DNA from: Lytechinus pictus
Taxonomy: Eukaryota
Reading direction: 5' to 3'
Assembly: GCF_037042905.1 (NCBI RefSeq)
Contig: NC_087257.1
Coordinates: forward strand, 3,968,001-4,032,000
DNA length: 64,000 nucleotides
The notes under the pieces are model-generated. The model ran no database searches. It saw only the letters and a list, made by a program, of their open reading frames with translations, and was not told the DNA's origin. This document shows, piece after piece, positions 5,710-59,603 of the stretch. The position numbers and the translations under genes were made by a program. Each line of letters opens with the position of its first letter. The first letter of the stretch is position 1.

Positions 5710-8700
5710 TTTGGTAAGAACAGGAAGTCATCAGGTACAGGACCAAGGAACATTTCACTGAAAATAAAGAGAAGAGATCCCCACATAATTTTAAGTAATA
5801 ATAGCAATGCACAATGAAATATACTCCTAAAATTTTGAGGAAAGGCAATCAGGAACCTTTCATTTACTTCAATTGAAAGAATGATATAACACAAACATAA
5901 ATAACAAAATTAATTAAGATCATCAAGCATTTTTTAAAAGGATAACACCTCCTCTGACTTTGAAGTAAAACTCATCAGACCCGCATGGATCCAATGGGGG
6001 CAGTTAGCACGGATGATTGATGTTTTGATATGATCCTGACCCCCCAAAGTGTGGAAGTCTATTAGAGACTTACCCACGGATAGATTCAAGGACAAGCACA
6101 TTCATCACCAAATCATTGGACAATCCTGCCACATCCTTGAAGAGTTAATACCTGATTTTGACCAAGATGGCACAGTTAGGACTGACCATCAAAGTTTTAA
6201 AAACCATCCAAACCAACAGAGTATTGGTCTTCGTTAGCACTAGCCATCAATGTTTCCAGATCATTCTGACCAACAAGACAAGGAGGTCTTTGAACAAGTG
6301 TGACTTCATGATCAAGCTAAACATCAACAAAACATAGGACAATTGCTCTTTAGCCTTTGATGTAGAGCGTTGTCTTACTTGAGGGAAGATTGGATGTTCA
6401 AGGACACCCAAAATCCCATTGTCATATTATAGGCCAATCCTTCATCTGGGGCCTGTTGCAGAAAGAGTTGCGTTCAAACACAATACGGGTGCTTCAATGG
6501 CTGAAAATCAAGTTGCGCAAGATTTTTTGAGTTGCGTTTGATTGCAACTCTTTCTGCAACGGGCCCCAGAGCTTTGAATTTGATCTAATCTCACCTGATC
6601 TTGACCCAGTCGGCGCAGTTAGCACTCGCCATCAGGGTTTCCAGGTCATTCCGACCGACAAAGTAAGGAGGTCTTTCGTTGATCTTCTGAGGTGGTCTTT
6701 CCAAGACTCCCACCGGGATGTATCGGTGGAGGAACGAGAGCCACTCTAACAGGAATCTCCTTGTCTTCCGCACTCCCTGCATCAAGGAAATCACAAATTC
6801 AATCTTAAAGCTTTGTTCGAGTTCTGGTATAGAGATCTAATTTTGACACGAAATGGTTGGAAGCAATCCAAAAGTACTCTGCAATGCCTATTTTGAATAA
6901 CAAAGTTTAATTAAAATAATTTAGGCTTGCTCCCATTTTTTTTCTGTCATTTTTATGTTCATCATTTGCTCATTATTCTACTATCATACATTTACCTGAA
7001 AAATTGTCAGGCAGATTTCATTTATTTTTCTTCACGATTCTGTTGATTTTTGTTCAATTCCGACAGCATTGTATTTTCTATTGTTACCAATACAAAAGTA
7101 TTGTCCTAACAACTTCAACAGAGACAGCGGGATCGACATCCCCGACTTCTGGATGCGAACCATCCGACAGCACAATACCCCCTTACCTGGCAGTGCACGC
7201 CGACCCGTTTTTTGAAAGAACGCATCTTTCTCACTAGATGCACGATTGATTCAGCTAAGACGGAATACGAAACTTTAAAAGCCGATATCAAAGAGACTAT
7301 GCAAGCCCAACATAGTACAGACATTCTGAAGGTTAATGAAAATATCTACGCAGATGTTTTCGCTAAATGCAAGAAAAGGCAACAGGCTAAATTTGAAAAG
7401 TTGATACAACCCAAATCGAAGAAGGTCACCGCCTCATTAGCGAATGAGGATAAATGGGTTGTTAACCTATCCTCGAGACAGATCACCTCCACCGAGGAAC
7501 AATTGCTTAAGAAAGGCCTCGCCTTTGCCGTGTCGCCCCAAAAATTGCCCATTACCGAGATTGTAGCTAAGGTTGAAACCGCGGTCAAGTATATTGATCC
7601 AGTTTCGGCCGATGCCGCACGAAAAGATGTAGATTCCATTCTACAGAGAGCACGTCCTCCGAAACCGAATACCACAAGAGAGATGCGTGATGCTCTTAAG
7701 ACACTCAAGAATGATGATAGCATCACAATCCTCCCTGCGGATAAGGGTAGTGCCACAATCATTTTAGATAGTACCGCCTACGAAGACAAAATGACCGAGC
7801 TTCTGAGCTCTGGTCCGTATAAAATGCTAAAGAAAGACCCCACAGATCGAATGTGTCGCAAACTGACCAGTACGTTACTGGCACTAAAGAAAGACAAAGT
7901 TCTAGATGAGGCTACATACAAAAAGATAAAGCCCACACAGAAACAGCCACCTAGAGTTTACGGGTTGCCCAAAATACACAAACCCGGGATACCTCTCAGA
8001 CCAATAGTATCATGCATAGGTTCATTTGCCTATAACCTATCAAAGTACCTGGCGGACATCCTGTCCCCTCTCACTAACTGCTCAGAACACACGGTTTCCA
8101 ACTCCAGTGAATTCGCTGAATTCACATCAGAGCAGACAGTCAACGAACAGGAATCCATGATCTCTTTTGATGTAGTCTCCCTCTTCACTAACATACCGAT
8201 AGAGGGCGCATGCAGTACGGCCCTGCAACGCATGCAATCCGACCCCACATTATCAGAACGTACCACACTTATGCCCGAACAAATAGCCGAACTCCTGGAG
8301 TTCGTCCTCAGATCCACATATTTTCTGTACAGAGGCTCTTTCTATGAGCAAACAGAAGGAGCAGCAATGGGTAGCCCAGTCTCAGCGGTTGTGGCTAACC
8401 TATATATGGAAGGTTTTGAACAGAACGCTTTGCTCAAGTGTCCTTCCACATGCCACCCTCGGGTGTGGAAGAGATACGTCGATGACACTTTCATAATCGT
8501 AAATAGATCCGAAACAGACAGCCTACTCTCATACATGAATAGCCAGCAACCGTCCATCCAGTTCACTCTGGAGACTGAGCAAGGAGGGAAATTAGCATTC
8601 CTTGACACGCTAGTCCAAAGACACGAGGGCGGGAAACTCTCCACCTCTGTCTACCGCAAGCCCACTCATACAGACCAATACATACCATATGATTCTCATC

Positions 8701-11700
8701 ACGACAAATCGGTCAAGAAGGGTCTTGTTAAGTGCCTGTTCGACAGAGCAGCACGTATCATAACTCACCCACCTGAACTCCCGAAAGAAAGAGCACACAT
8801 ACGTGGCGCCTTGTACAGCAACGGCTACCCACGCCGTTTTATCAAGAACACTTTCAAGAAAAAACAACCACCAAGGGATCAGAAGGTTTTCAAGACTTGC
8901 ACAGTCTTGCCATACATAGATGGCCTTTCACAACAACTTAAACGCCGATTAGAAGGTCACGGTATTCGAACGGTTTTCCGCTCGGACACCACCTTACACA
9001 AACAGCTTGTACACCCCAAAGACCCTATCCCTGATCACAGACGTGATGGCGTAGTATACAACATTCCTTGCCAGGGATGTGACGGGTCTTACATCGGAGA
9101 AACAGCCCGACCGATAGTTGAACGCATTTCTGAACACAAGCGCGATGTTCGGTTACAGCGAACCGACACATCCGCGGTGGCAGAACATGTTTGGGAGAAG
9201 CAACACCACCCAGATTGGGAGGGTGTACATTGCATTGCCAAAGAGAGACATTGGTATACACGCAGGATTAAGGAGGCTATTAATATACGTCTTTGTCCTA
9301 ACAACTTCAACAGAGACAGCGGGATCGACATCCCCGACTTCTGGATGCGAACCATCCGACAGCACAATACCCCCTTACCTGGCAGTGCACGCCGACCCGA
9401 TCGTTCCCGGCCCCGAACGAGGGACCGCTCAGCTAGTCAGCCCCCGCCCACGGGAAACTAGCGAGCCCGCCAATTTTGTCTAATTTGCATATTGCCTACC
9501 CACGGCGTATTTGCATATACCCCCGGCTTATTTGCATATACGGATTACCGGCCGCACCGCATACCGACGCAACGGATCAATGCCCACCTATTGTTCTCGC
9601 GTTCGTGCGTACGGTCCTGGAGATTAGTATAAATAGAGTACGTTATCAGATAATTTTCGTCACTTGATAAAGAGTTGCAGCGGCACTCGAAAGCTCGTGA
9701 ACTTGTAAGCTAGTGAACACTTTTTGCGAGAGTGATCACGAATTTCCTAGAAAGCCAGTGAACACTTTTTGCGAGAGTGATCACGAATTTCCTTGTTGAC
9801 CATAGTAGATTGCGAGACAAATGAATACCCTCTAGCGATTATTTCAAATCTGCAATAATGAACCTATTTAGTACAAAAGTTTATCTTTCAGGGGGTGAGC
9901 AAATCAAAACAGGTGGTTTGGTAATGTTTTTAATCCTTCTGATCATGTTGAAATTAATTTTGTAGTAATTTCTTTTTCTATTCAAGAAGAAATCATGTGT
10001 CTTCTGTACTCCCTCCATCAAGGAAATCACAAACTCAATCTGAAGCGTTTAAAATTTTTATTTGGTGATGTTTTCTCAAACTTCTCTTCATGCTAAATTA
10101 ACTGCTATAGCTGGCCAGCTGTGTTCTGAAGCAGTATTTCTATGATCAGATATTTAGACATATATTTTAACATTAGATTTGTACACACAAGGAAATGACT
10201 GTAATCACTTAGGCCTGATGGAAAATGCACAAAGATAACAAGATGGTACATCAATAAAAGCAACATTCATGAATAATAAACATTCATTTTCATCCCATTA
10301 GATTCTACAAGTTTGGTTAAAGAGATGGTCCGGCCTGAAAGTATTTATAGCTTAATAAAAAGAGTAGAATTCACTGAGCAAAATGCCGAAAATTTCATCA
10401 AAATCGGATAACAAATAACAAAGTTATTGAATTTTAAATTATAGCAATATTTTGTGAAAACAGTCGTCATGAATATTCATTAGGTGGGCTGATGATGTCA
10501 CATCCCCATTTGTTCTTTTGTATTTTATTATATGAAATTAGGTTTATTCAAATTTTTTCCTCCAAGAACAAGAAAAATTGGATTGACAACTGATTTAGTG
10601 CATTAGATATTTATTGAAATAAGGGGAAAAAAAAGAATTTTATGTAATAACATAAGAAAACGGAAAGTGGGGATGTGACCTCATCAGCCCATCTAATGAA
10701 TATTCATAATGACTGTTTTCACAAAATATTGCTAAACTTTAAACTTCAATAACTTTATTATTTGTTATACGATTTTGATGAAATTTTCGGCATTTTGCTC
10801 TTTGAATTCTACTCTATGTATTAAGATATAAATATTTTCAGCCCGGACCATCCCTTTAATACACAATGCCTGGATGGAATCAAACTGACTATTCAGTGAC
10901 TTACCGGAGTGTCTGAACCCCAATGTAAGAGCCCTAGGTTTACATAATCCTGTAGTATGTCAAAGCGCTCACTGGATGAGATATCCCAGTGTCTATAAAA
11001 TGTAGAGAGGAGAGGAAGAATGATAGGTTAAAGGGATATGGGTTTTGAGAAAAATGCCCCAAAATAATGGTGTCTTTCAGATTTGAAGTAGTGATATATG
11101 ATGAATATCAAATTCAAAAGATTCTATGAAATGATGATGTCATAACAATGATGATGATGGTGAATAATAATAATAATAATATGCAACATTTATATAGCGC
11201 TTAATACAAATGTTTCTAAAGCGCTGCATACTATTACCACAGCTTTCGCACAGCTATCCTGATCGGACGCTCCAGCATTCAAGGAATTCCTTCCTACCCA
11301 TGGAATTGATGATGATCTTATCAGGTAACTATTTAACACCTGGGTGGAGAGTAGCAAAAATGCGAATTGACTTTTTTTTCACCGGATGCCGGTGCCTCTG
11401 TGGGATTCGAAAACACATTCCTCAGATCATGCGGCAAATGTCAGAACTACTACACTACAGCACTTTCAAAAGATGACCCATATCAACTTTGAAGGTTGAA
11501 CAGCTTCATAGTATAGTAAACACACAACTTTTAGAAAATCTGAGTTGTACCTCTGTTCTTTGATCTCAGTGAATATCCATGGTTTGATGAGGGCACCTCT
11601 GGCTATCATCTGGCCAGCCGATCCACTCCTCTCACGGAAGAAATTTGCATCTTCGAACGAAAGGATGTCTCCGTTTCCTATGTGGAACAAAGAGTATACT

Positions 11701-14700
11701 AATAATACATATCATAGAGTTTTTCTATAGTCATACATGAAACATGTCTTTGATCTTAGTGAAACTCTTAAAAGAATCTCATCATAAATCATTAAAAAAT
11801 AGACGATACAAAAAAATATAAAGAATGTATGCAAAGGAAGCAACAAAGGTCAAAGAACTATCGAGGCTTCTCCCAGAGCAACATGGTTGCAAATTAGATA
11901 TCAAAATAACAAAACAATCACAAATATGTACATGAACATGGAACCCCTCCCCTAACCCCCGAATGGTTGAGGGAATAAGTAAGATTTACAGACACACGGT
12001 ACCTTTGGAACAGTTCAATTCATAAGATAGTGATGTGGATCCTTGTTAAACAGGGGTGTGAGTGGTCACAAATAAAAAGATCTGAAAAAAGCTGAAGAGT
12101 GTTGAAAAAGTGTGAAATAGAAAGAGCTCCCATACTTTTTGTACAGAGGAAGCCAAAAATAAGCTGAAAATCAAAACAAAAAATCTGAAATCAGCTTAAA
12201 ATCTGAACTCTCACACCCCTGGTTAAACCATTTTCATCCCAAAACCACGACCGGTCAGTAGGCACCAGTCATTCGCACATTTTCCTGTTAGCTGGAAAAT
12301 TTATGTTGTCACCAGTTTTGTCAAAGGTATTTGATTTAATCCTTATCAGTGGTCATTTTCCCGATAATTGGTCAGTAAGCCTCATAAAGTCTCTTTACAA
12401 AAGTGGGTCAGTTTGCGATCCCTCAAATTATCGAGGGATATCCCTCTCAAGTTGTCTTGGAAAGTTTTTTGCTCAGTTCTAAACCGTCGCTTAGTATCAT
12501 TTCTAGAAGAATATAGTCTCAATACAGCCAATCAGATTGCTTTTAGAGCAGGTTATAGAACGTCAGACCACATGTTCGTTCTAAAAACTATTCTTGATAA
12601 ATATATAAGATGTAAAATAAATGATAACTATAATAAATTATATGTATGCTTTGTAGACTTAAGAAAGGCTTTTGACAACGTTTGGAGGGATGGTCTCTGG
12701 TACAAACTACTAGAACATGGAATTGGTGGAAATTTCTTAAGAGTCATCCGTGACATGTATTCAAAATGTAATGTATCGATCAAATTAGACGAAGGTGTTA
12801 CCCCATATTTTCATACTAATATTGGAGTAAAACAGGGTTGCGTAATTAGTCCAACTTTATTTAATTTATTTGTAAATGACATAACTAATATATTTGATAC
12901 ATCAGTAAGCGATCCAGTAACACTTTTTGATAAAGAACTAAATTGTATAATGTATGCTGATGATCTTGTTATTGTGTCGAAATCCCCTAAAGGTATGCAA
13001 CACTGTTTAGATAAATTCACCGCATACTGTAAATCCTGGATGTTAAACATAAATGTATCTAAGACTAAGATTATGGTGTGCTCAAAATCAGGGAGATCGA
13101 ACGAAGGGGTTTCATTTGAAATTAATGGAGAAACACTATGCACTGTTAGGGAAATGAAATATCTTGGTATTGTTTTCGCAAATAATGGATCACTTAAAGT
13201 GGCCGCAAGGGATTTAGCTGATAAAGCGAGAAGAGCATTGTTCAAATTGTACAAATCTTTTGGTTCCTATACTCCTAGCACTAAAACCTTGTTGCATCTT
13301 TTCGATGCAACGATACAACCGATATTACTTTATGGATCTGAAATTTGGGGTACTAATGTTGTAGACATAGAAAAAAATCTACAATTAATGGATGGGAAAA
13401 CAGGGCTTTATTTTAAACACAAATCTGAAAAGGTGCACATTCAATTTTGTAAATATATTCTTGGGGTAAACCGCAAATGCAGTAATTTAGCAGCGACAGC
13501 TGAAATCGGTAGATATCCAAAAGTCATTCAAATTGCCATAAATATACTGAAATATTGGATTCGAATACATAATATGGACGAAGATAGTTTGGTTTACAAA
13601 GCTTTTGTAGAAAATGTAAGTCTATTGAATAACGGAACCAAATGCTGGCTTAAGACAATTCAGGATATTTTTAACATACTAGATATTTGTTGGAAAAATG
13701 ACACCCCCATACTTGATCCAGAAAATATACCAATTTCCCAAAAAGAATTTATTACGATATGCAAAACATCATTGGAAAGAAGATTTGACGAACAATTTGA
13801 ATTGGATTTATTTAACGACAGGGACACTAGGGAAGGAAATAAACTAAGAACTTTTAGGCAATTCAAATTCAATATAAGACAAGAAAATTATTTATATTCA
13901 ATACACAATGTCAATTTGAGAAAAAATATAACCAAGCTCCGACTGAGCGCTCATAATCTACCAATAGAAACAGGAAGGTACAAAAGACCGGAGAAGATAC
14001 CACCTAACCTGAGATTTTGTGAAGATTGTAATTTGAATTTTGTCGGGGATGAGTTTCACATTATAATGAAATGTAACAAATATAAAGATTTGCGTAAAGA
14101 TTTTTTTGAAAAGATAATTACCTTCAATATTAGGTTTACTGAAATGGAGTGCCAGGAAAAATGTATCTACATCATGAAATTGGAAACTGAAGCCTTGATT
14201 AAATTGTTTTGTTCTTTTATCCAAAACATAATTGCTATTAGGGGTGATTTCTAAGTACTACAAATATCAACCGGTAAACACTTTGAAGTAATATATTCGC
14301 AATATTTTTACACAATGAATTTACATGTAATGCCATTCTTCTCATTCTTCCTCTCTTTCCCGCTCTCTCCATTTTCGAACTTCTTCCCTCTTTATTTCCC
14401 TTTCCTCTCTCACTTTCTTTATGTTTTCTTTATCTTTTCTTGGATATCAGTCTCTATATTCATTGTCAAAATATCTATCCGAATGATTCCTATGTTAATT
14501 GTGTATATTTGTATATAATTTACAAGTTGTTTCTTTTTTCTTTTTTTTCTTTTTGACGAAATACTATTTTGTTTTTGTTTATTTGCTTATATTCCTTGCA
14601 TTGTATATTTGTCTTGTATCATTTTGTACTTCTTGTTATGAACAAAATACTGGCAATTGCCAGTGAAGTTCTAATAAATTCAATTCAATTCATGACTGGT

Positions 14701-17700
14701 CATGTGAAAGATTTCAGCCAACCATTTGATAATGGTCTCTATCACGTGACCCGACAGTTTATTCAGTTGCAGGTAAATTTGCCAAGGCGACTCTAATCCA
14801 ATCCTAAAGACTCGTCTGGGTTAGTACATGTGTGTCAGGTGAGAATTTCATGAAGCTGTTTGTAAAGCATGTTTGCTTTGTTGCATGTTTTTTTTTGGCA
14901 TGTTTGTAAAGCGCTTAGAAACTGTATTGTATCAAGTGCTATATAAAAGCTCCATATTATTATCATTATTATTATTGTAAGTTATGAGAGACTTTACGAA
15001 AACTGGTAATCTTTTCTTGGGAGCTAAATCCAAACCAATTAAAATTTGGCATGCATAATTCACCTCAAGAAAGGATCACCAGTAGTTCATAAAGTCGCTT
15101 GGTACAAACAGCTTTATGAAACACCCACCAGGGGGCCGTTTCATTAAGCTGTTCGTATTAAAGTTAAGAGTGACTTTAATACCCCTTTCATAGTGCCCTC
15201 TTCATTTTTCACCGGCGAACTTCGCCGGCGAACTTCTCCGCCTCGCATTCCTCACTTCCCCGGCGAAGAAAAAAATGTACCCTTTCTTCCCCGGCGAAAG
15301 TCAACGGGCGATTGCAGAACAAACGAAAGAAAATTGTAAACATTACTTCTAACCTATTACAAAAAGGTATCAAAAAAATTAATTACAACATATTTTGGAA
15401 GTATTACGATAAAAACAAACGATATCACCTTGTTTTTATATCTTAGCGCATTTTATACATGTAAAAAGTGCTTTTTAATAAATATTGTTAGTAAAAAAAA
15501 AAAAAATGTTCGAGGGTATCTACTTGGCCATAGCATTCAGCTGAGCTTGCAACTATCGCGCGCGGAATCTCGGTGCAGGGGACTTTGGGAGAGAAAAAAA
15601 TTGACCTCTGACGTCATTAAAGAGGAGAAGTTCTCCGGTTTGCTTTCATACTGGCCTTTTCACCGGTGAAACAGTTTCGCCGGCGAAGTTCTCCACCTCT
15701 AGAGGTGGAGAAGTTCACCGGCGAACTTCTCCACCTCTAGAGGTGGAGAAGTTCACCGGCGAACTTCACCGGTGAAGTTCTCCTGTGTACCTTTCATACT
15801 GGACACTTTCCCCTTCGCTGGCGAACTTCGCCGGTGAAGTTCGCCGGTGAAAGGCGCAATATGAAAGGGGTATAAGAAGGCCTGGTGATCCCTCCTTGTT
15901 GTTCATTGGTGATTATTTAGCACGTAAGAAAGGTTCAGCAGTCGTTCTTTAAGTCGCTCTTAACTTACAAGCAGCTTTATGGAAACATCCACCTGGGGCC
16001 CATCTAACAAAGAGTTACGATCGATCAAATCAACCTCAAACGCATGGAAATTCATTGATGTCAATCATACATTCACATTTTTCTTGAAAATTCAGTGTGC
16101 TTCTCTTTGTTTACAAAGGACATTGTACAAATTTCCTGAAGAAAAAATTATGACATTGATGGATTTCCATATACTTGAGGTTGGTCGGATCAATCGTAAC
16201 TCTTTGTAAGATGGGGCCCAGTTTCGAACTCACCAATGAATGGATAGGGGTCCGCAGCCTCCGTACACTGCCTCAGGTAATCCCAGTCGGCAAGCTTAGA
16301 ATAACGCTGCTCTCTCGTACGACCATGAACCTAGAACAGAAAAATAAATCAATATCATGGCCCCGTCTTACAAAGAGTTACGATAGATCCAATCAAACAC
16401 AATTATGGAAAACCAGCAACGTCAACATGCATGTTTGTTCAAAATATTTTCTAGATATGATGTAAAGTCACACCTTTTTTCATTTTATTGAAAAGTCAGT
16501 GTGCTTTTTTTTGCCTACAAAGGACAAATTTCCTGGAGAAAAGATTATGACACTGTTGGATTTCCATGTAGAACAAGTTGTTCGGATCACTCGTAACTCT
16601 TTGTTAGATGAGGCCCAGGGGAACCACTTGCAATCGATAGAAAAAGTCTGAATATCATTGAGAATGACTCCTTTTCTACGTGAAAAATGTGTTTTCTGTG
16701 GCCAAAATACTATGATAAATTGGGGATCCAATGTCTAAACACCAATTAGCATATAAAATTATTGGGGGCAGCGTAGTCTTGTGGTTATTAAGACTCTCAT
16801 CTTTCTAAAAGGACGTGGGTTCGATTCCAAGCCATGGTGTGTTTTCCTTCAGCAAGAAATTCACCCACATTGTGCTGCACTCAACCCAGGTGAGGTACAT
16901 GTAAATGGGTACCGGCAGGAAGTAATTCCTCAAAAAGCTGTGCGCACCGGAATCGGTAGACTAGCTTAGCCGGGGTAATATGGGAGCGCCTTAAGCACCT
17001 AGCAAGGTTGATACATGCGCTATACAAATTCTATATTATTTTTAAAAAAAAACATAATTTTTGCTCTGAGTTTTCTATACATATAACAGTACAACCTGTT
17101 TTCTTGTACATATTCAGTTCCTAGAGATGATCTAAGATGATAGAAAATTTGAAAACATGGCTCTACCCTGAGATTTATTTCTATCATTTTACTTAATATC
17201 ATGTGGTAATAATGAATTAGGTACAGACTATTATGGAGGTTTGTGCTTTTGTTATATTGTTTGATATTACTTTCAAATAATTTACGAAATATCACTTTCA
17301 ACATTCTTTTGATTGTGCACAGCTGTAAAAATTACCAAGGGTTTGCCAGGACAGCTTAGAAATATAATAAGCTATCAAAATACCAGGTTATAATTACCGT
17401 GACGACGGAGGCTCCCCATTCGTAGACGCGAGGTATGATCTTGTGTGCGATTCGACTTTCGTTATGGACGCCAGTTCTCATTTTCACGGTTAAAGGAACA
17501 TCTAAGACCTGTATCGAATACAGTAATAAATAAATACATCATTTATAATGTGCCATTACTCAAATGATGTGCAGAAAGATAAAAAAATATGATAATAAAT
17601 GATAATAATATAAAAATAGTTATAGGATTAAAAGGCTTCCAAAATAAGAAACAAGTGGAGCATCTCTGGCAGTCTTGCCTGCATTACTCGATTCAATATA

Positions 17701-32500: not shown

Positions 32501-35500
32501 CCCTTGCCCTTCAACCATGCACCTCCTATAAATATGTTTTCTTCTTAATATATTATAGACATTGCCGAGAGAAGTCTGATTTCCAGCCAACGAGAGTCCG
32601 CCAAATTGAAGGGAATCTTGGAATTAGCAAAACTCCAAGGAAACGCCCAGCAACAGGTGCTTGATGTAAAACAAGATGACGTCATTAAACTGGCCGTCAA
32701 ACAAGCCGAGCTCTACGACCAGATCCGAAAGTTGAAACTGACAATCGAAACATTAAGAAACAAGGTAAAATCCTAAATTAAAGAGAAGAAAGTAAACATT
32801 ATATCTACATTATATTCATTAACAGCACCAAAATCGTGATCATTAATAATAAACGAAAGCACCTTTCAGCTTTGATATTGTGGAAGAAAAAGAGGACCTT
32901 CAACAGGTCTACATGAAAAAAGACATTTATTATCTGGAGATTTGTGCATTTTGATTGTCAAATAGCGGCGCTCCGTATTCTAGAATGAAAATAAGCTGTT
33001 CAAACAATCTCTGTCAATACATGTTTAAGATCAGAAAAAAAACACACTAAACACTAAAGAGTCCGTTATTGTATTTCCTATATAGGGCTAGGTTAATGCA
33101 TGGACCTATAGTTCCATGGTTAATGCATTACTCACTATTATTCCAAAGATCGGCTAGATGAAATTTGTATATTGATGATAACGTTTGATATGAAATAAGT
33201 AATTATCTATACGGCTTATTTGCGAATCATAACAAAATGCAAAATCTCAATGATTTAACATGTTTAATAACCCAGCTTGAAAAATATGAAGCTGAACGAG
33301 GCGGTAGAGACCATCATCCCGGGGACGAAGGCGCAGAGCATCCCTCAAACATGCCTCTACCGACATCAGCATCCCGAACAACCAATCGAAGACAGAATCA
33401 AGCCGACGTTCGCCGGTCGGTGGATAGAAGTGATGGAAACAGTGAGAGAGGGCCAGTAAGTTTCCATACTTAATTGTAACATCTTTATGTCTAATAAACA
33501 TCTTACGTGGCATACCCAAACCTGTGCAGAACATATTGCGAGAGAGTCAATACTATTAACACAAACATGTGACTAAGTCTGTTCTGTATATAAATTTAAG
33601 GCCCGCCTCACTAAGCAGAGAAAATACATTTCAACCTTTTTACCTTTTTAACAAATGTGAATTTTCTCATTCCCCAAAATCGACCCCCTTCTATATTAAA
33701 ATTTAAAAATAGTAGTCATGAGCGTCTTGGGGGATCGTTTTGTGAATGATTTATCAAGACAATTACCGCCCTTTCACAAAGTAAAAATACCGTAATTTTA
33801 ATGATGAATCCAGTGAAAAATAAGGCTAATGACATGAATGACGAATTTTAAGCACGTGTGAAACCAAACTAGAATCACGAACGCTAATCACAATCACGAA
33901 TTCAAATTCTACTCCGGAGGTGAATTCCAGTTAAGTTTCACTCAAATTACGGTACGAATGTTCAATTACGAATTGCAATCATCATTCAGGTCATCATTAC
34001 AATGATGATTCAAGATTCACGTGTGAAAAGGCCCTTAATCATACAGAAAACAGACAATTCCATTTTTTTTCTTTGTTAGGAAGATGTATTGGACCATCAA
34101 GATATCACCATCAGAGAATCAATGGAAGAAAACAGACTAATCCCCCGGAGGACTTACAAATTGCTGCTCGCCAGGAGGACCATCGCCCGAGCTAATTTTC
34201 GAATCAAATACCATCGTGCGATTAATAACTCACTCAAAGTGAGAGTAAAACAGAAGGACAATAGGTAAAGCAACATACTGTGATGATTTATTGTGACATT
34301 TACTTGTACTTTCCTCACGTTAACAAAGAGATTGTATATACCTTACGGTATATGTTAGAAAAACCTGTCCTTCGCATTCACTGCATCGGCGATTAGCACT
34401 TTGTGAATAACAAAAAGCATGCTTACAGAAAAGGCAAGTAAAGCAATATTTATTTGCGAATTACACTCGTCATCGGATCAAAGTTACTTAATTGACAGAA
34501 AGAAAGATGGAGCTCCCATTATTTTTTAATTTCATAATAATAATATTAATAATAGTAATAATAATAGATTAGCAATAATATTCATACTTGCCTATATAGC
34601 GGGGAACACTAAATTTATCAGTTTTTGAATAGTAAACTTAAATAATAGGCATCGTAGGAATGTATTTTGCTACAATCTAGACGGATAAGATACATATAAA
34701 TATGTTTCACTTATACCATAATTATTCAGGAAACTCCGACGTATATATCGGGCTCAAAGTCAGAATTTTGCAAAAATACGATAGCCTATTGGCCCATAAA
34801 CTTGGTTAATAATTCTTTGCAGAATTCGAGATCTCCTTGTCGATAAGGACCGCATCCTTAAAGTTCTGGAACGAGTGAGGCAGCTGGCCCAGGCCAAGAT
34901 GGAAGTCATCTACAAGAACCTCCTGTCCCTCCCTGATGACATAGCCACGATGACATCACCTTTGAATGCTAGAGAGACGGTGAGGGCTTACCTGAAAGAG
35001 GTGGATAGCTCGGCATCGTCGGAGGAAGCCGAGAGGATTATTCTAAGGTTGAAGGAGTTTGGCCGGTTCCTTGGCAGCGACGAGTCCTTCGATGAATTTA
35101 TTAAGGTATACGGTGACTCTAGCAATGATTGTCTGAATGGGGGTAAATGTTGGTCTAATTACCAGAATCCTGAACTGGAATTTATATTTATCATGTTTGG
35201 AAAAAAAAAATTATTGCATACTCCTACCATAACGAGACGACATTATTTATCACATTTTCACCTGGTCTTTGTCAGAAAGGACAAATAAAAGTTAACCGAC
35301 GTCATTATAATTGCTGCTGGATAGATATCGAAATCAAAAGAATAATATTGTAATAGGGATAATGGAAATATAACGACTCATTTGAAACGAATTTGTAGTC
35401 TCAGCTTCACGCAAGGCTATTAAACAAGTTATCAAAACTTCTTTTCAGAACCGGGGGAAGCAGCTTGTTGAGGTACCTATACCGACCAAAGAGATTGCAA

Positions 35501-44659: not shown

Positions 44660-44999
44660 ATACAATTTTTTTTAAGTTTTAGTTTTAGTTTTATTTTTAG
44701 TTTTTTGGTTTATATTTTGATTAATTGTACATATAAAATTTATTTCTCGCTTGTCATATTTTGAGGAGCCCACCTTATACAAGCTTTGCTTTTTAGTGGG
44801 ATCCTCCATTTTCACAAATTGTAAATCACAAATCCTTTACATAATATTATTTTGTATGTAACTTTCTTATAACATGTCTTTTTCAAGTTGATTTTATGAC
44901 CTTGATATATTTTTTATGATGTCGACTTGTTATGATTGTATTTATTTGATTTATATTTTGTTGAAAATGAAATAAATGAAATGAAATGAAAATGAAATG
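44660..44999 (+). mobile_element. Crack/L2-group LINE 3' UTR fragment
   Basis: Stem-loop GGAGCCCAC...ACAAGCTTTGCT...GTGGGATCC (44765-44803) resembling the 3' hairpin of the 49-53 kb LINE; AATAAA(TGAAA)n tail. The 5' boundary is approximate. Confidence 0.6.
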
Positions 45000-45209
45000 T
45001 AGCTACATAATTATACGTATGGTCGTGATTCTACTTTGACCTTAACTGAGTTAGTCTTTTACGCTATCGCAGACCTATAAATCAAGATAAGAAATATAGC
45101 TAATCATGCAATTCGATCTGGTTGACACTATGGACATATAGGTCCATGTTGACACTAACCATAGAGCTAATAGCTCTATGCACTAACCGAGAGTTCCAAA
45201 GTCTGAGAC

Positions 45210-48200
45210 ATGGTTTCGGCGATCAAAATGGCGCTCTCGATAATACAGACGTCCAGTATCATACTACTGTTCGTATGTATTCTTCTTAAAGGCTGCAAAT
45301 CACAGATCCAATGCGCACAGACGGGAAGGTGCACATGTACATTTAACGATCAACAGAAAACCAAAGTTAATTTTGGTGTGATTGGATTAAGGAATGGAAA
45401 ACCAAAGTAAGTATAATAATCTATATAGAATTACTGTGTATATGCCTTTGTAAAGAGAGTAGACCATTTACTTTTATTTTGTAAACAAATTAAACTTAAA
45501 ATTTTGTGGATCTGCCCTCACTTGCCACTTTATGACATGCAAAGAAGTTAGTTTTTGATCCACCTCCATTTTATGGCCATATTTGAATGGTTTAGAACAA
45601 AACGCCGCAACAACAAATACAATTCAAAAGCGATAGAATAATAAATGGAGTAATAACTAGGAAAAAGACGAATTGGTTACATGGCGGCGACAATTATTGC
45701 TCCGATGGAAAACCTTAAGCCAAACACATAATCTAACCTCCAAAACTAAATATTGAACTCTAATACTTATCTTAACATTACTCTGAACCAGTGGCGTACC
45801 TAGGATTTTCCACGGGGGGGGGGGGCAAATTCGTCCGCCAAAAAATTTGACAAGCAAAAAAAAAAAAAAGGTCTTCAACCACAAATAATGGACCTCGTAC
45901 CAGAAAAAAAAATTTGACAAGCAAAAAAAAAAAGGGGGGGGGGGCAGGGATATGTCCCTTGCATGGGTTGTGGCTCGTCAGGGGGGGGGGGGCAGTCTAC
46001 CCCTCGTAGGTACGCTAGTGCTCTGAACCATAAACTCTATTACAATCCAAACTCTAACCCTAGCCTATCCACTCCGAGATATTAAGACCGGAGCAAATGC
46101 CGTGACACCGAAGAATTAAGAGACATGAAAAAGATATTTCTTTATTGTTAAATGTCAAGTCCACCCCAGAAAAATGTTTATTTGAATAAATAGAGAAAAA
46201 TCAATCTAGCAGAACACTGGAAATTACATAAAAATCGGATGTAAAATAAGAAAGTCATGGCATTTTAAAGTTTCGCTTATTTTTTTCACAAAACAGTGAT
46301 ATGCACAACTCAGTGACATGCAAATGAGAGAGTCGATGATGTCACTCACTCACTATTTATTTTGTTTTTTATTGTTTGAATTATACAAAAAATTTTTTTT
46401 TTACAGATTTGACAATGAGGTTCAACTTGACTGAACCAAACAGTATTAAACAATCCTAATTCCACATGTTCAGGAGGAATTAATCGTCGTTTCACTTGAC
46501 AATGAGGAGAAAATTAGAATATTTCATATTTCATTTAATAATATACAAAAGAAATAGTGAGGGGATGACGTCATCAGTCTCCTCATTTGCATACTGACCA
46601 GGATGTGCATATAACTGTTTTATGAAATTAAGCGAAACTTTAAAATGTCATAACTTTCTTATTTTACATCCGATTTTGATGAAATTTTCAGTGTTATGTT
46701 TGTTGGAGTTTTTTCTTTTTATTCAAATCAACTTTGAAAAAAGGGAAATTTTAAGGTTTTTAAAGAAATCATGAAGAGCATACATATCTCACCAATCCAC
46801 TTACGCGAACGTATGTACAGATTTGACATGTTTGATATTCAGACCTTAAAAGGGGGCAATCACTTTAGGTAATCATGAAAAAGAAGCAAATTATGCCACT
46901 ATACATTAATGGAACTATAGGCCTATTTGGTGTACATTGACTTGAAAACGGGATGTTTTAGTACAAAATGAATTAAAAAGACAATGCGAGCACCAGGAAT
47001 GATGAACACATATAGGCCCTTAAGCAAATTATGTTTCATAATAATAATGATAATGTGACTTATACAGCGCCAAATCCACTCTGTAGAGTGCTCAAGGCGC
47101 ATAAAGAGCTAAGAGTTAAATAAAAAAGTTTTTAGAAGATTTTTTTAAAGTTTCGACAGAGGTACATTTTTTTATGTCTTCAGGAAGGCTATTCCACAAA
47201 GTGGGGCATGCAAAAGCAAATGATCTCCCCCCCCCCCAAAGTTTTTGAAACTTTTGGAATAATAATGAAGCCAGAAGTGGATGAGCGCAAGGACCTGCTT
47301 CATAAAGTTATGAAAAAAATATTTCTTATGTAATAAAATATAATGTAGTATTACGCCTCTGTCTCCGACCATGCATACCTGCCCTGTTTAAACAAAACTG
47401 AAATAAGTAAAGGAACATGAAGGGCATTTATTATATTTTACCTCTGATTTATAGGTTTGACTTCGACTCCTATGGACAGAAAGGAGCGTTCAACTATGCT
47501 TTCAACCCATGTTATCCTTTCTCGGCGGGGACTTGCAAAGATGTCGTCGTAAGTACGCCCCCTACTGGCAAAATAAAAAAATCTTGTCATTCAAATATTT
47601 TACATATGTAGTGTGCACTGAAAATTCTTAGGTTTTATCGCAGTCACACACAAAAAGCCATCTCGAAACCAACCGACCGAAACATGAATATTCCAGTTAT
47701 TTGATTTTAAGAATGCAACCTTTTATGTATAGCCACTGTCAGTTGAGGATATGTTGGGGTGGGATGGGCTGTCTTAAAAACGAAATGATAAATAAAAGCG
47801 TTTACATTCTTAGCGGGGGATGGCTTGCCGCGCAAAAAATGGGGATCTTTGAAGACAACGTGGACCCATTTTAGAGCCCCTCCTATTAGAATAACTGGAC
47901 CCCCACTGCCCAGTATTCCATCACAATACTTATGTAGTATGTCGTATTTTTCATTATAGTCGTGTCAAAATGAGGCGGAGGGACCTAAACACTGGGACCT
48001 CGGAAACCCCGACCCGGTGAGCTGGGAAACGCTTCCTCAAGGGACTATTCGAGTTACCTACACTGCTACCCAGGAAGAAGATGAAAGGTAATCAAGTGAT
48101 TGGCTGAAAACTATCACGTGATGATCAGTCATATATCTTTAATAACAACAGGGAAATTTGATATTGGCCAGTACTAATGACTAGTTCTATTAACCATGTT

Positions 48201-51200
48201 AACCGGTCATTGTTCTGAAACGCTGGAAAGTACACAGTGTCACAATGGGCCTTTTCACACGTGAATCTTGAATTATCATTGTAATGATGATTGCTATTGT
48301 AATCTTGACTGTGATAGTGTTCGTGATTCTATTCATGTTCTAGTTTGGTTTCACACGCGCTAAATATTCGTCATTAGCCTTATTTTTCACTGGAATCATT
48401 CACATTACGATTTTTTACCGTGTGAAAGGGCGGAATGTGATTGCAGCGTGTTCATAAGGTCGACAACAATCATGTATGTGATTCACACTTTTGAAATACT
48501 CCCAAATACTCAAATTAACAGTGTAAAGGGGATTTCACATTGCGTTCCACACTGTTGGACATACTGTTCTTTCCAGCAGGGATGGTTTATAACCAAGGAT
48601 TCATTTTCGGCATTATTTAGCATTACAAAATTACACGCACTTGATACCATTGAGACAGTGCAAATACCCTCGGCTACACCTCAGGCGTTTTAGAACTGTC
48701 CTGAATGTAACTCGTGCGTGCAAATACCCTGCATGATGCGGTCTTCTATTATGTTATTATCTACTACCAATAAAAGTGGAGGGAAAACGGCTAATGAATT
48801 GCCAATTTGATATTTTACCATGGAGCTTTTAAACACAGATTTTACATTGCCTAATTAGTGATCCCATTTTTAGAACAAACATACATTTCTTATTCCTTGT
48901 GCAATTTCATTAAAACTTTCATCATTCGGTTTTCCTGATTTTTTTTCTCCTCTATCACACACCATTTTAAGACCAAGGGTACGTTGGAATCTCATATTCG
49001 CATAGTCCTCGGTTTGAACACTCGGACCTTAGATATGTCCGCAGTCCTCATTGCGACTACACGTAAACACACTGGGAACACGCAATAGTTTTAAAAGTGA
49101 ATTAAAGAATCTATCTTCTATTCATTTCGCTCATTTTAGAACAAGTGTGGTTAGTTACGTATGCGATCAAACTGCTATCAATGAACCTACATTTGCAGTA
49201 ATTTCAGAAGCACCAACAAGGACTTACGTAAGTTTCATTTGGATTTTATATTGACAATATTTGAAAATAGAGCTTGTTAAGAACTGGAATGAAAGTCGAG
49301 AAAAAATCAAGAATTTTGTTTCAGAAACACACATTATTGATTGATTGATTGATTGACAACGAATTTATTCATTCCAAAATTTCAACAAAGTTACAAAGTA
49401 AAGCAAAATATAATATAACATTTTGAAATGAAATAGGAACCTTCTGGAAAGCAAAGCTTGTTATTGAAGGTTTCCTTTAATAAATAAGACTTAATGCAAA
49501 AAACAATATATATATATAATATACTAATCATATCGTTCTTGTTGAAGTTCAAAATAGATACAATAAACAAGTCATCATATCTTTCTTGTAAAAATTATAT
49601 GTAAAAATTATATGTAAATCCTTGTTAAATGTATTTTATTTTTTTTTTTACATATTCTCCCAAGTAAAAAATAAACAAGGCTGGATTATCTTACAAGATA
49701 TGAAGAAAAAGTGAAAAGGACACACAAGACAAAACGTTACGAAAACAGGACGTGACAGAACGGTACAAGATCAAGACATGACAAAAAGTTATACCAAAAC
49801 AAGACAGACGAAGTATTACAAGAACAGACAAATTGAAAAAAAAGACAACGACAACAACAAAACAAAGGACAAAAACGAGTAAAAGAAAGAAAGAAGAAGG
49901 AAAGAAAAAAAACCCAAAAAAAAACAGGTAGAGCGAAAGAAAGGAGACGGGAAAAGAAGCGAAATAAAGGCAGGGTGGGGGAGGGGGGGATCCAGAAGAA
50001 CAGAAGATCCACAAGATATCCTAAGTAGGATGAATGATGTGAGTGTTATAGTTATTGGTTAGATTTTTTTTAAGTGCTCTATTGAAGCTATGAATAGTTG
50101 GCTTATTTCGTAAAGTTTGCGGAAGTGAATTCCAAAGTTTGATACCAGAAGATATAAACAGTTTGTTTGTTAATAATGTCCTCGTTCTAGGTAAATGGAA
50201 AAGTCCAGCAGATCTTGTAGGGTAGTGATGTACATTGATATTTCGTATGAACATAGAATAAAATACGTCTGGTAGTTCATCTTTACTAAGGTTGAACATA
50301 AAAGATCCAAGATTATAATGGTAAAGATCATGTATCTTAAGAATTCCATGAGTTTTAAAAAGAACATTCGTATGTGCCCGATAATGAGAATGGCAAATAA
50401 CGCGCAAAGCTTTTTTCTGAAGTAGTAAAAGTCTATTCAAATGAAAATCAGCACAACTCCCCCATGCAATAATACAAAAGTTCAAATGCGGGAGTATCAG
50501 TGTAGAGTATAAGTTTAATAATATACGAGTCGGAAAATAGAATTTAACTTTATTTATAATTCCAATATTCCGTGAAATTATTTTGCATGTGTTATCTATA
50601 TGTTCTTTCCATGACAGTCTGTCGTCGATAGTTACTCCTAGAAATTTCGTACTTAATACTCTTTGAATATTAATATTATCAAAAATAATGTTACCTGGGA
50701 GTTCATCAATGATATTGCTGAAGAGCATGTAATTTGTTTTAGTGAGATTAAGCGATAATTTGTTGGCTTTGATCCACTCTGAGACTAGTTTTAATTCATT
50801 ATTAAGTGTGTCAAGTAAATGTTTGGGGTCCTTATGAGAAAAAAATATATTTGAGTCGTCGGCAAAAAGAATGAATGATAAAGTACTTGATGATTTATAA
50901 AAATCATTAATGTAGACCAAAAAAAGAAGCGGACCCAAGATTGAGCCTTGAGGGACTCCACATGAGATAGATTTGGGAGGGGAATCTACATTTGCTATGG
51001 AAACATATTGCTGCCTACTGCTGAGGTAGTTCCTGAACCACTCCAAGGCTATCCCTCTGATTCCATAATAATTAAGCTTGTATAAAAGGATATCATGGTT
51101 GATTGTGTCGAAAGCCTTGGAGAAGTCCAGGAACACCCCAACAGTATGCTCATACTTGTCAATTCCATTGGCAATCTTATTAATCGTTGACAACAGGGCA

Positions 51201-54200
51201 TGAGTAGTACTATGTTTTTCGCGAAAACCAAACTGCAGGGGATAAAACAATTTATGTATATTAAGAAACTTTGTCGTGCGTACAAAAATTACTTTTTCCA
51301 AAACCTTCGAAAGGCATGTCAATAATGATATGGGGCGATAATTTCCCAACACGGTGTTGTCGCCTTTTTTAAAAATAGGGATTACTCGGGCTTGCTTTAA
51401 TGAAGAAGGTACAACTCCTTTAGAAAGAGACAAATTAAAGATATAAGTCAAAGGTTTAATAATGTGTATCAGGTTTCTTTTCAGGAGAATGTTACTTATA
51501 TCGTCACATCCTGAACTCATTTTATTCTTTAGTCCAGAAATTATATCAGCTAGTTCTTTTACGTCTGTTGGTGTGAAATATATCGAATTTGGATTAGGGA
51601 CATTAAGATAAGATGTGAAGTGTTTAGAAGAGGCAGGGATTGTGCTGGCAAGATTTTGGCCTACGGATGCAAAATAGTCATTAAAAACATTTGCCAAGGC
51701 AAGGGGATCCTCTACCAATTCACCATCAACATTTATTTTCGTGGGCGTAGACATTCTGAAGTTACCTTGTATAACGTTTTTTATAACTTTCCATGTATTT
51801 TTAACGTCGTTTCTATAGAGGTCAAATTGATTATGAAAATAATTCTTTTTACATTTTCTCAGTATACCTGTCAGAATATTTTTGTAGTCAGTGTACTTTT
51901 TTCTATTACTGTCGCAAGGCTTTGAAATAGTTTTTAAGTAAAGGTTATTCTTTCTGTTTATTGAGCGCAAAATGCTAGGTGTAATCCATGGGGACCTTGG
52001 AACCTTTTTGTAATTAGAGCGTTTGAATCGCACTACGGGAAAAGAGCTATTCATTAATGGATTCAATTTATTCATAAAAGCGTCAAATGCATCCTCGGCA
52101 TTTTGAATACTGTAAATTCCTGACCAGTCAACATTTCCTAACTCTTCATTGAACAGATTCATATTATTTTCAGAAAAATCACGTCGAGTATTATGATCAA
52201 CTTTGTGTTCAGTGGCGTTGGTATCTAGTTTAAAATGCGAAAATATGGGAAAATGGTCCGACAAATCAGAAAGAATTATTCCCGTAGAGAGAGTACTTCT
52301 GGTATTTGTAAATATATTGTCGATGAGAGTAGCCGATGTACCTGTGATTCGAGTTGGCTTGGTTATCAAAGGAAGGAAACCTGCTGTCATTATTACATCC
52401 GAAAAAGTTTGAACAAAAGTATCAGTATCGTATTTTAGTAAGTCAATATTGAAATCGCCGAGTAAAAAACACGTTTTATTGACCATCTCATGGAGTGCCA
52501 ATAACCCATGGAATGTATTTAAAAAGTCATCGTGGGAGGAGTTAGGCGGCCTGTAAATCGTTCCAACCAGAATATTTTTGTCGTTGGGCATAAGAATTTC
52601 AACAAAAAGTGTTTCAATAGCATCATTCATTAAAGTAAGATCAGGCCTTAACCTGTAATCGAATTGTTGGGATACAAAAAGAGCAACGCCTCCACCTGAT
52701 TTCCCTATTCTATTATTTGTGACCAAATTATAACCTGGCAGCGTATAAAAGGATAGTTGAGTAGAGTGGGAAAACCACGTTTCTGACAAACCTATCACAG
52801 AACAAAAGAGCTTAGAATTCAATAAAAGGGAACGAAGTGATTCAAAATTTTTGTTGGCACTGCGAATGTTGCAATGTAGCATTAGAAAGTTACTGTTGTC
52901 AAGTTGTTTCGACGCTATCTGTTTATCAGTAAAATAGAGCGAGGGGGTATGTTGATACGTATTATCATTAGGATCAGAAAGAGAATCAAGATTAGCTTGT
53001 GCATTGAGAGTTTGAGCTACGGAGTCATGAAAAACAGAATTTTTACATTCATCATGTTCATCAAACTTCGAATTAAAGGCAGCCTGGAAAGTATCGTGTA
53101 ATTCATCATTATCTATATCAGAAAATGGGAAATTTGTGTTTACAGCCATCACAAAGGATGTCTAGGGGATCTCCAGAGATAGGGAGGAGTATATGCAGAT
53201 CAGCTAAACGAAATAACACAAGACATGATATTACGAGAATGACAGATACGAATACAGACAAATAACGACAAACACAAAAACAAAAAGAAAACAAATATAC
53301 AGTAGCACTTAAATCCTAGGAACCTTCAAATTATAAAAAGAGGGAGAATATTCAGAGCTGACTATATAACAGGAACAAAATAAGCAAAGTATTTTAGGCA
53401 ATATTACAGACATTAACCCTTCGAGGGAAGACGTAAAATGTGTCTATATTTTCCATGTATATACATTTCCATGAGGTGGAAGAAGAAGAACCAACAAGCA
53501 CCAGCAATAATGAGACAATTGAAAGGTTATTGGAGGAACATGCAAGCCCTTTAAATCGCAAAGCATAGCAAATGAACTAATACTAGACATTACGATAAGA
53601 TACTTCGATATAAAAAGATTGGGACAGCAATCAAAATTAATAAAACGAAAGAATGATAAACATCTGATACAGTATTGTGTTGGATATGTATCAATAAGTC
53701 CAATATGTAAAAAATGTTCATTTATACCATTTGTGTAAGAGTCTCCCAAAAGTAAGACAATAGGAGGAATTAATTTGATACATTAGCATGAAAAAAGAAA
53801 ATTCTGCATAAGAAGTTCTTTGCATTATTCTTTGCATTCTTTGCATTATCGAACAGTGTATTACTTTTCTAATTAATAATATTCTAATTAATAATATTTC
53901 TAATTAATAATATTCATTTCGTCGATAAACGAGATCTTGCCCGAGTTTTTTCCCAGGATAATGTATTTATTCGTATTTCTTTCTGTACATACATGTTTGT
54001 TACAAAGGTGTTTTTTTTCTTACATTCAGGTATGAAATCTACAGTATAATCATAAAGCATCATAACAGTAAAAGATAAATGAAATAAACACAGAAAATTA
54101 TGGAAGTATTTAAAAAAAAGGACAAGGAGAACCCCTGAACAAGCAGGGCTTGTAAGGCTAGGCTCCCCTTAGATGTATGTACCGGTATTCAATATTGATT

Positions 54201-59466: not shown

Positions 59467-59603
59467 NNNNNNNNNNNNNNNNNNNNNNNNNNNNNNNNNN
59501 NNNNNNNNNNNNNNNNNNNNNNNNNNNNNNNNNNNNNNNNNNNNNNNNNNNNNNNNNNNNNNNNNNNNNNNNNNNNNNNNNNNNNNNNNNNNNNNNNNNN
59601 NNN
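59467..59603. other. Assembly gap
   Basis: Run of N. Confidence 0.99.

Follow-up and report, generated by a model that had tools for sequence, protein, structure and literature searches.

A palindromic target-site motif is a feature of the P, 1360 and Galileo transposons, and Beall and Rio reportedly described, in 1997, donor-site footprints of the Drosophila P element and alternative end joining.

P transposase has an atypical and characteristic mode of cleavage, a staggered cut of 17 nt (PMC7776569; PMC10983969). Excision of the Drosophila P element leaves a 17-nt non-complementary 3' tail on each chromosomal end, and the ends are rejoined by polymerase-theta-dependent end joining (PMC2895639; Chan, Yu and McVey 2010). 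At junctions recovered after excision of Drosophila P{wa}, a copy of the TSD is followed by a stub of at most 17 nt, an insert, a second stub of at most 17 nt and the other copy of the TSD (PMC2895639). Three further systems bear on the DNA described below: Galileo, a member of the P superfamily in Drosophila, has 7-bp TSDs and a palindromic consensus target, GTANTAC (PMC4168063); BuT5, a MITE of about 1 kb from the Drosophila repleta group, is mobilised by a divergent P element (PMC3698922); and zebrafish Pdre2 (Pdre2/THAP9) has 13-bp TIRs and 8-bp TSDs (PMC10983969).

The stretch analysed here, referred to as the window, comprises 64,000 nucleotides of the sea urchin Lytechinus pictus (C13:3968001-4032000 of an 812-Mb assembly), and reversed patterns served as controls. 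The initial annotation had described two stacked palindromes of 20-21 bp with exact 7-bp duplications upstream of the ATG at 45210, a description that is correct to the base. We conclude that both palindromes, called scar 1 and scar 2 below, are very probably donor-site excision scars of non-autonomous P-superfamily-like DNA transposons. An excision-scar event is clear, but it is of a kind already known; no report of P-type scars in echinoderms was found in the literature searched.

Anatomy of the two stacked palindromes

Table 1. Coordinates of the palindromes, their flanking repeats and neighbouring features, counted from the first letter of the window
Feature	Positions	Strand	Basis
High-copy interspersed repeat, 3' end, with (AAATG)n tail	44850-44999	+	Genome copies; ends ~120 nt upstream of the scars
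Candidate canonical TATA-like box, TATAAAT	45076-45082	+	Sequence; 46 nt upstream of the first insertion site
Scar 1, left TSD copy, TTGACAC, 7 bp	45122-45128	.	Sequence; direct repeat GTTGACACTA, spacing 27 bp
Scar 1, imperfect 20-bp palindrome TATGGACATATAGGTCCATG	45129-45148	.	Sequence and genome-wide family
Scar 1, right TSD copy, TTGACAC	45149-45155	.	Sequence
Scar 2, left TSD copy, CACTAAC, 7 bp	45153-45159	.	Sequence; direct repeat CACTAACC, spacing 28 bp
Scar 2, 21-bp palindrome CATAGAGCTAATAGCTCTATG	45160-45180	.	Sequence and genome-wide family
Scar 2, right TSD copy, CACTAAC	45181-45187	.	Sequence
Exon 1, signal peptide, of the cation-dependent mannose-6-phosphate-receptor-like gene	45210-45408	+	RNA-like contig
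Third scar of the same kind: GTTAATG, CATGGACCTATAGTTCCATG, GTTAATG	33092-33125	.	Pattern scan

Scar 1 divides into the halves TATGGACATA and TAGGTCCATG, whose arms match at 8 of 10 pairs, and consists of two fused 10-nt TIR stubs of a P-like element of the CATGGACC type. Two substitutions separate it from the family junction, CATGGACCTA followed by TAGGTCCATG; it is the common 10+10 junction, with a shared AT, altered by two later substitutions. Its right TSD overlaps the left TSD of scar 2 by 3 nt, the last three of the one serving as the first three of the other. In scar 2 the 10-bp arms are perfect and a single base lies between them; its minus strand is made of CATAGAGCTATTA, 13 nt of a family-B TIR (described below), and TAGCTCTATG, 10 nt of the other TIR, the two stubs overlapping by the microhomology TA. 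Its right TSD ends at 45187, and the ATG at 45210 lies 22 nt past that point. A repeat search recovered the inverted arms of 10 bp as well as both pairs of direct repeats, which are spaced 27 and 28 bp apart. The assignment of the palindromes to two different P-like families, also proposed in the initial annotation, is borne out by CATGGACC-type ends in scar 1 and CATAGAG-type ends in scar 2.

The pattern formed by seven nucleotides, YATRG...CYATR and the same seven nucleotides occurs at three sites in the window (33092, 45122 and 45153) and at none in 200 Markov-shuffled windows, while a generic search for palindromes enclosed by 7-bp repeats returned six sites in the window against 0.15 expected. 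The shuffled-window test, together with the genome-wide counts against reversed controls given below, excludes a chance origin of the palindromes. The site at 33092 lies 119 nt upstream of the ATG at 33237 of a 78-aa ORF, a possible gene. Elsewhere in the window (15680-15790), a perfect 18-bp palindrome, TCCACCTCTAGAGGTGGA, is present twice, each copy flanked by GAAGTTC, inside a tandem unit of ~45 bp; the arrangement resembles a palindromic unit repeated in tandem rather than a scar of the CATG type.

A mechanism that would account for both palindromes follows the described behaviour of P elements. One element would have inserted at TTGACAC and another at the overlapping CACTAAC, each duplicating 7 bp. 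Later excision by a transposase would have proceeded through a P-type staggered cut, flush on the 3' strand and ~17 nt inside the TIR on the 5' strand, so that each chromosomal end would keep a 3' tail representing the first ~17 nt of the TIR. End joining at 2-nt microhomologies (AT in scar 1, TA in scar 2) would then trim the tails to 10+10 and 13+10 nt, respectively. The expected products are palindromes of 20 and 21 bp between duplicated 7-mers, adding 55 bp to what would be the core promoter and 5' UTR of the gene downstream.

The gene, its promoter and a related species

The gene downstream of the scars is, judged by its sequence, a cation-dependent mannose-6-phosphate-receptor-like (M6PR-like) gene: a Pfam search of exon 1 alone gave nothing useful, and the later exon region at 55815-56159 matches PF02157 and PF09451. 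Across 45167-45408, a spliced, RNA-like contig of L. pictus is identical to the genome (0 mismatches); the match breaks off at 45408, and the splice donor GT of exon 1 is at 45409. This exit point coincides exactly with the donor, so exon 1 is real, and transcription covers no less than the right-hand two thirds of scar 2. The initial annotation had placed an addition of ~55 bp at a promoter/5' UTR position, which is correct, the RNA-like contig beginning within scar 2. Raw RNA reads gave zero coverage over exon 1.

The fused stubs of scar 1 create a TATA-like centre (45137-45140) that lies 30 nt upstream of the 5' end of the contig, itself inside scar 2. There is some small chance that the two scars rebuilt the core promoter of the M6PR-like gene, with transcription starting on scar DNA that has no counterpart in the sister species; we regard this proposal as doubtful.

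The segment 45000-45450 is unique in the genome, and no paralogous empty site was found, the promoter being single-copy in the genome. Immediately upstream, the repeat at 44850-44999 has 196 candidate copies, of which the 40 that were scored are 93-99% identical and cover only query positions 1 to ~150. Other mobile DNA is present in the window as well. An intact ORF of 1043 aa on the minus strand (50021-53152) encodes endonuclease (PF03372) and reverse-transcriptase (PF00078) domains and represents a young non-LTR retrotransposon in an intron of the M6PR-like gene; further reverse-transcriptase ORFs (PF00078) lie at 12368-14254 (+, 628 aa) and 7212-9461 (+, 749 aa). A run of N at 59467-59603 marks a gap or mask.

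In a second organism, represented by DNA contigs from two studies, exon 1 and the intron align at about 4% difference. The same contigs also align to 45078-45131 and 45016-45042 and skip 45132-45205. The left break of this alignment falls at most 1 nt from the predicted edge of the empty site, while the right break lies 20 nt beyond the prediction. An empty state in a relative had been anticipated in the initial annotation: no alignable counterpart of either palindrome is present, while the clean empty site TTGACACTAAC is not seen in the second organism. At the level of sequence alignment, the skip would fit absence of both scars from that organism, though no clean empty site is present.

Scar families and their parent elements

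Both palindromes belong to families dispersed through the genome, the excess over shuffled and reversed sequence that the initial annotation had looked for being large. The 21-mer of scar 2, allowing at most two mismatches, occurs at 144 sites (reversed control, 1 and 0 on the forward and reverse strands), and the consensus 20-mer CATGGACCTATAGGTCCATG, under the same threshold, at 274 sites against 1 for the reversed control. The more general pattern CATGGASCT-N0-30-AGSTCCATG is found at 2171 sites, against 1. The scar families thus counted comprise hundreds to thousands of copies each. Nearly every copy at the loci fetched is flanked by its own 7-bp direct repeat; exact 7-bp TSDs surround the consensus 20-mer copies in L030-L044. 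Of 64 roughly independent scars at the loci fetched, the 7-bp TSD is exact in 47 and carries a single mismatch in six more, and no other length fits.

Several scars share or interrupt one another's targets. Two scars are present at L013:1466-1528, with GTCAGAC present three times as the shared 7-mer, and two at L001:1544-1614, where CTAGTAC is likewise present three times. A family-B scar lies inside a 22-bp CATGGACC-type scar at L014:1494-1543 (target CATGGAC), and another is nested in a scar at L015. Re-use of targets by stacked or nested scars seems common.

Longer scars reveal more of the terminal sequence at their centres; one such stretch, the 17-mer CATGGACCTATTACGAA, led to the long elements with such termini whose existence the initial annotation had predicted. 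Genome-wide it has 618 matches, against 0 for the control, and many of these form +/- pairs 842 bp apart. The parent, family A, is a non-coding element of ~842 bp with a perfect 31-bp TIR starting CATGGACCTATTACGAA and with 7-bp TSDs. Family B, about 1.0-1.3 kb in length, has the ends CATAGAGCTATTACAGAAGGAG, starts with CATAGAGCTATTACAG at both ends and is likewise flanked by 7-bp TSDs; CATAGAG stands in both arms of the 21-mer of scar 2. Its ends number 42, all eight +/- pairs (8/8) have perfect 7-bp TSDs, and its copies measure 409-1289 bp, apart from one of 3715 bp. This long copy (C3:50645764-50649478) has a perfect 7-bp TSD, ATAATAC, and no match to the P-transposase domain PF21787; it may represent a nested insertion in a copy, or may carry another gene. 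Scars of family A are on the order of as numerous as its intact copies, or outnumber them.

Two pairs of the 17-mer were considered as autonomous copies and rejected: the pair spanning 3409 bp (L075) is two separate scars, and the one spanning 1711 bp (L076) belongs to a family-A element that carries a nested insertion, neither containing a long ORF. By analogy with BuT5, which is also non-coding and about 1 kb long, families A and B likely depend on a P-type transposase acting in trans. In contrast with BuT5, for which the autonomous partner is known, families A and B are known from non-autonomous copies.

The scars resemble the Drosophila P footprints in their order of parts (TSD, stub of at most 17 nt, microhomology or templated filler, stub of at most 17 nt, TSD), in TIRs that start with CATG and in the 31-bp length of the family-A TIR. 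The sea-urchin TSD is 7 bp, whereas that of Drosophila P is 8 bp. The Drosophila footprints came from laboratory excisions, whereas the sea-urchin scars are natural and number in the thousands; here we infer the enzyme, a P/THAP9-type transposase, and the repair pathway, as well as the order of the two insertion/excision events. Galileo and 1360 are likened to the sea-urchin elements by TSD and target only, sharing 7-bp TSDs and a palindromic target, which at the sea-urchin sites is GTnnnAC. The very long, foldback-like TIRs of Galileo differ from the 22-31 bp of the sea-urchin elements. Pdre2/THAP9 offers another P-like transposon system in a deuterostome, in which the active transposase is a feature of the zebrafish; its 13-bp TIRs and 8-bp TSDs differ from the 22-31-bp TIRs and 7-bp TSDs found here.

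Cut signature, enzyme and alternative origins

Single matches of the family-A 17-mer either run on through all 31 bp of the TIR or end at nt 17, or at nt 18 in cases of an ambiguous next base, as in all of the sampled cases (12/12). The limits of 17 and 18 nt are inseparable, since both are compatible with the commonest 27-bp junction and a scar of 36 bp reads as 18+18. By analogy, this 17(/18)-nt stub limit matches, and may reflect, the staggered cleavage at 17 nt known from the Drosophila P transposase. When 46 reconstructed target sites are symmetrised, their profile reads GTnnnAC, with T2 and A6 at 79% and G1 and C7 at 52%; the three targets in the window, TTGACAC, CACTAAC and GTTAATG, fit it in part. 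Together with the parent elements and the 7-bp TSDs, the stub limit and this Galileo-like target uphold the earlier reading of the palindromes as P-type excision footprints, left by two independent insertion/excision events.

The genome contains 41 matches to PF21787, the RNase-H N-terminal domain of P transposase, in open frames of up to 959 aa. Intact P-type frames are located at C4:26170661 and C21:9248440 (959 aa each), C12:261850 (817 aa), C2:3327208 and C6:10246707. Comparison of coordinates placed none of these matches near family-A or family-B ends among the ends listed, and no P-like transposase is encoded by the ORFs of the 64-kb window. The link of these TIRs to a P-type enzyme is drawn from four indirect features, namely the 7-bp TSDs, the GTnnnAC target, the 31-bp TIR starting with CATG and the 17(/18)-nt limit, which suit the P superfamily but none of the other superfamilies described so far. 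The scars could instead derive from another, possibly undescribed, superfamily that combines 7-bp TSDs with a long staggered cut and is not of the P/THAP9 type, as would suit both the missing linkage of a transposase gene to the TIRs and the 3.7-kb family-B copy at C3:50645764-50649478 that fails to match PF21787. This origin is improbable given the four features and the presence of P-type transposase frames in the genome.

A different question is whether the P-type ends were joined directly. Products of Drosophila P excision mostly reflect incomplete repair synthesis followed by end joining (PMC2895639), and internally deleted copies do occur here, such as the 409-bp copy of family B. The palindromes might accordingly be read as extreme internal deletions left when gap repair, by synthesis-dependent strand annealing with a sister copy as template, was interrupted. 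Interrupted repair, however, predicts stubs of any length. Genome-wide, 199 family-A scars keep 17 nt or more, and 196 of them stop at nt 17/18; the remaining three reach nt 19 and are read best as carrying filler, and none has stubs of 20-30 nt. We therefore consider interrupted repair a poor account of the scars, with little chance of being correct, and favour direct joining of tails cut to a fixed length.

The composition of the junctions fits direct joining as well, and also bears on the suggestion, made as an alternative in the initial annotation, that palindromes of 20-27 bp are ultra-minimal mobile elements transposing as units. Identical junction types do occur at many loci, each with its own TSD, and the 27-bp form (17+10) makes up most of the first 100 listed, as such units might. 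Yet within a family the junctions vary widely, in length (18 to 38 bp) and in filler, with both microhomology and templated filler present. In the commonest products (27, 28 and 25 bp), one tail is intact to its 3' end and meets the interior of the other at a microhomology of 1-2 nt, and some other junctions have short templated repeats; the recurrent forms are those expected from terminal microhomology. Two 17-nt staggered cuts would moreover cross within an element of 20-27 bp, which is shorter than the two cuts combined. Drosophila P requires internal transposase-binding sites beyond its 31-bp TIR (PMC7776569), and the short palindromes lack subterminal sequence. The suggestion is therefore unsupported, and transposition of the palindromes as units is very improbable.

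Finally, a local tandem duplication, or a conserved pair of palindromic protein-binding sites unrelated to transposition, might be imagined from the position in the core promoter and from a reading of the region as three units that start with CACTA and end with CATG, but it can be dismissed with near certainty, as these palindromes recur at hundreds of unrelated loci, where the 7-bp duplication is different each time, match the ends of mobile elements and have no alignable counterpart in the related species.

Excision scars of P-type elements, the reading that we prefer, carry several implications for the sea urchin. Their number points to P-type cut-and-paste elements that have been very active in the sea-urchin genome. 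The scars also record the cut geometry of the enzyme, and the 17(/18)-nt limit implies that the staggered cut of the Drosophila P type is conserved in an echinoderm. Remnants of 20-35 bp are missed by repeat annotators, yet they add palindromic DNA to promoters, and in this model organism of developmental biology such scars supply regulatory and coding change that goes unnoticed.
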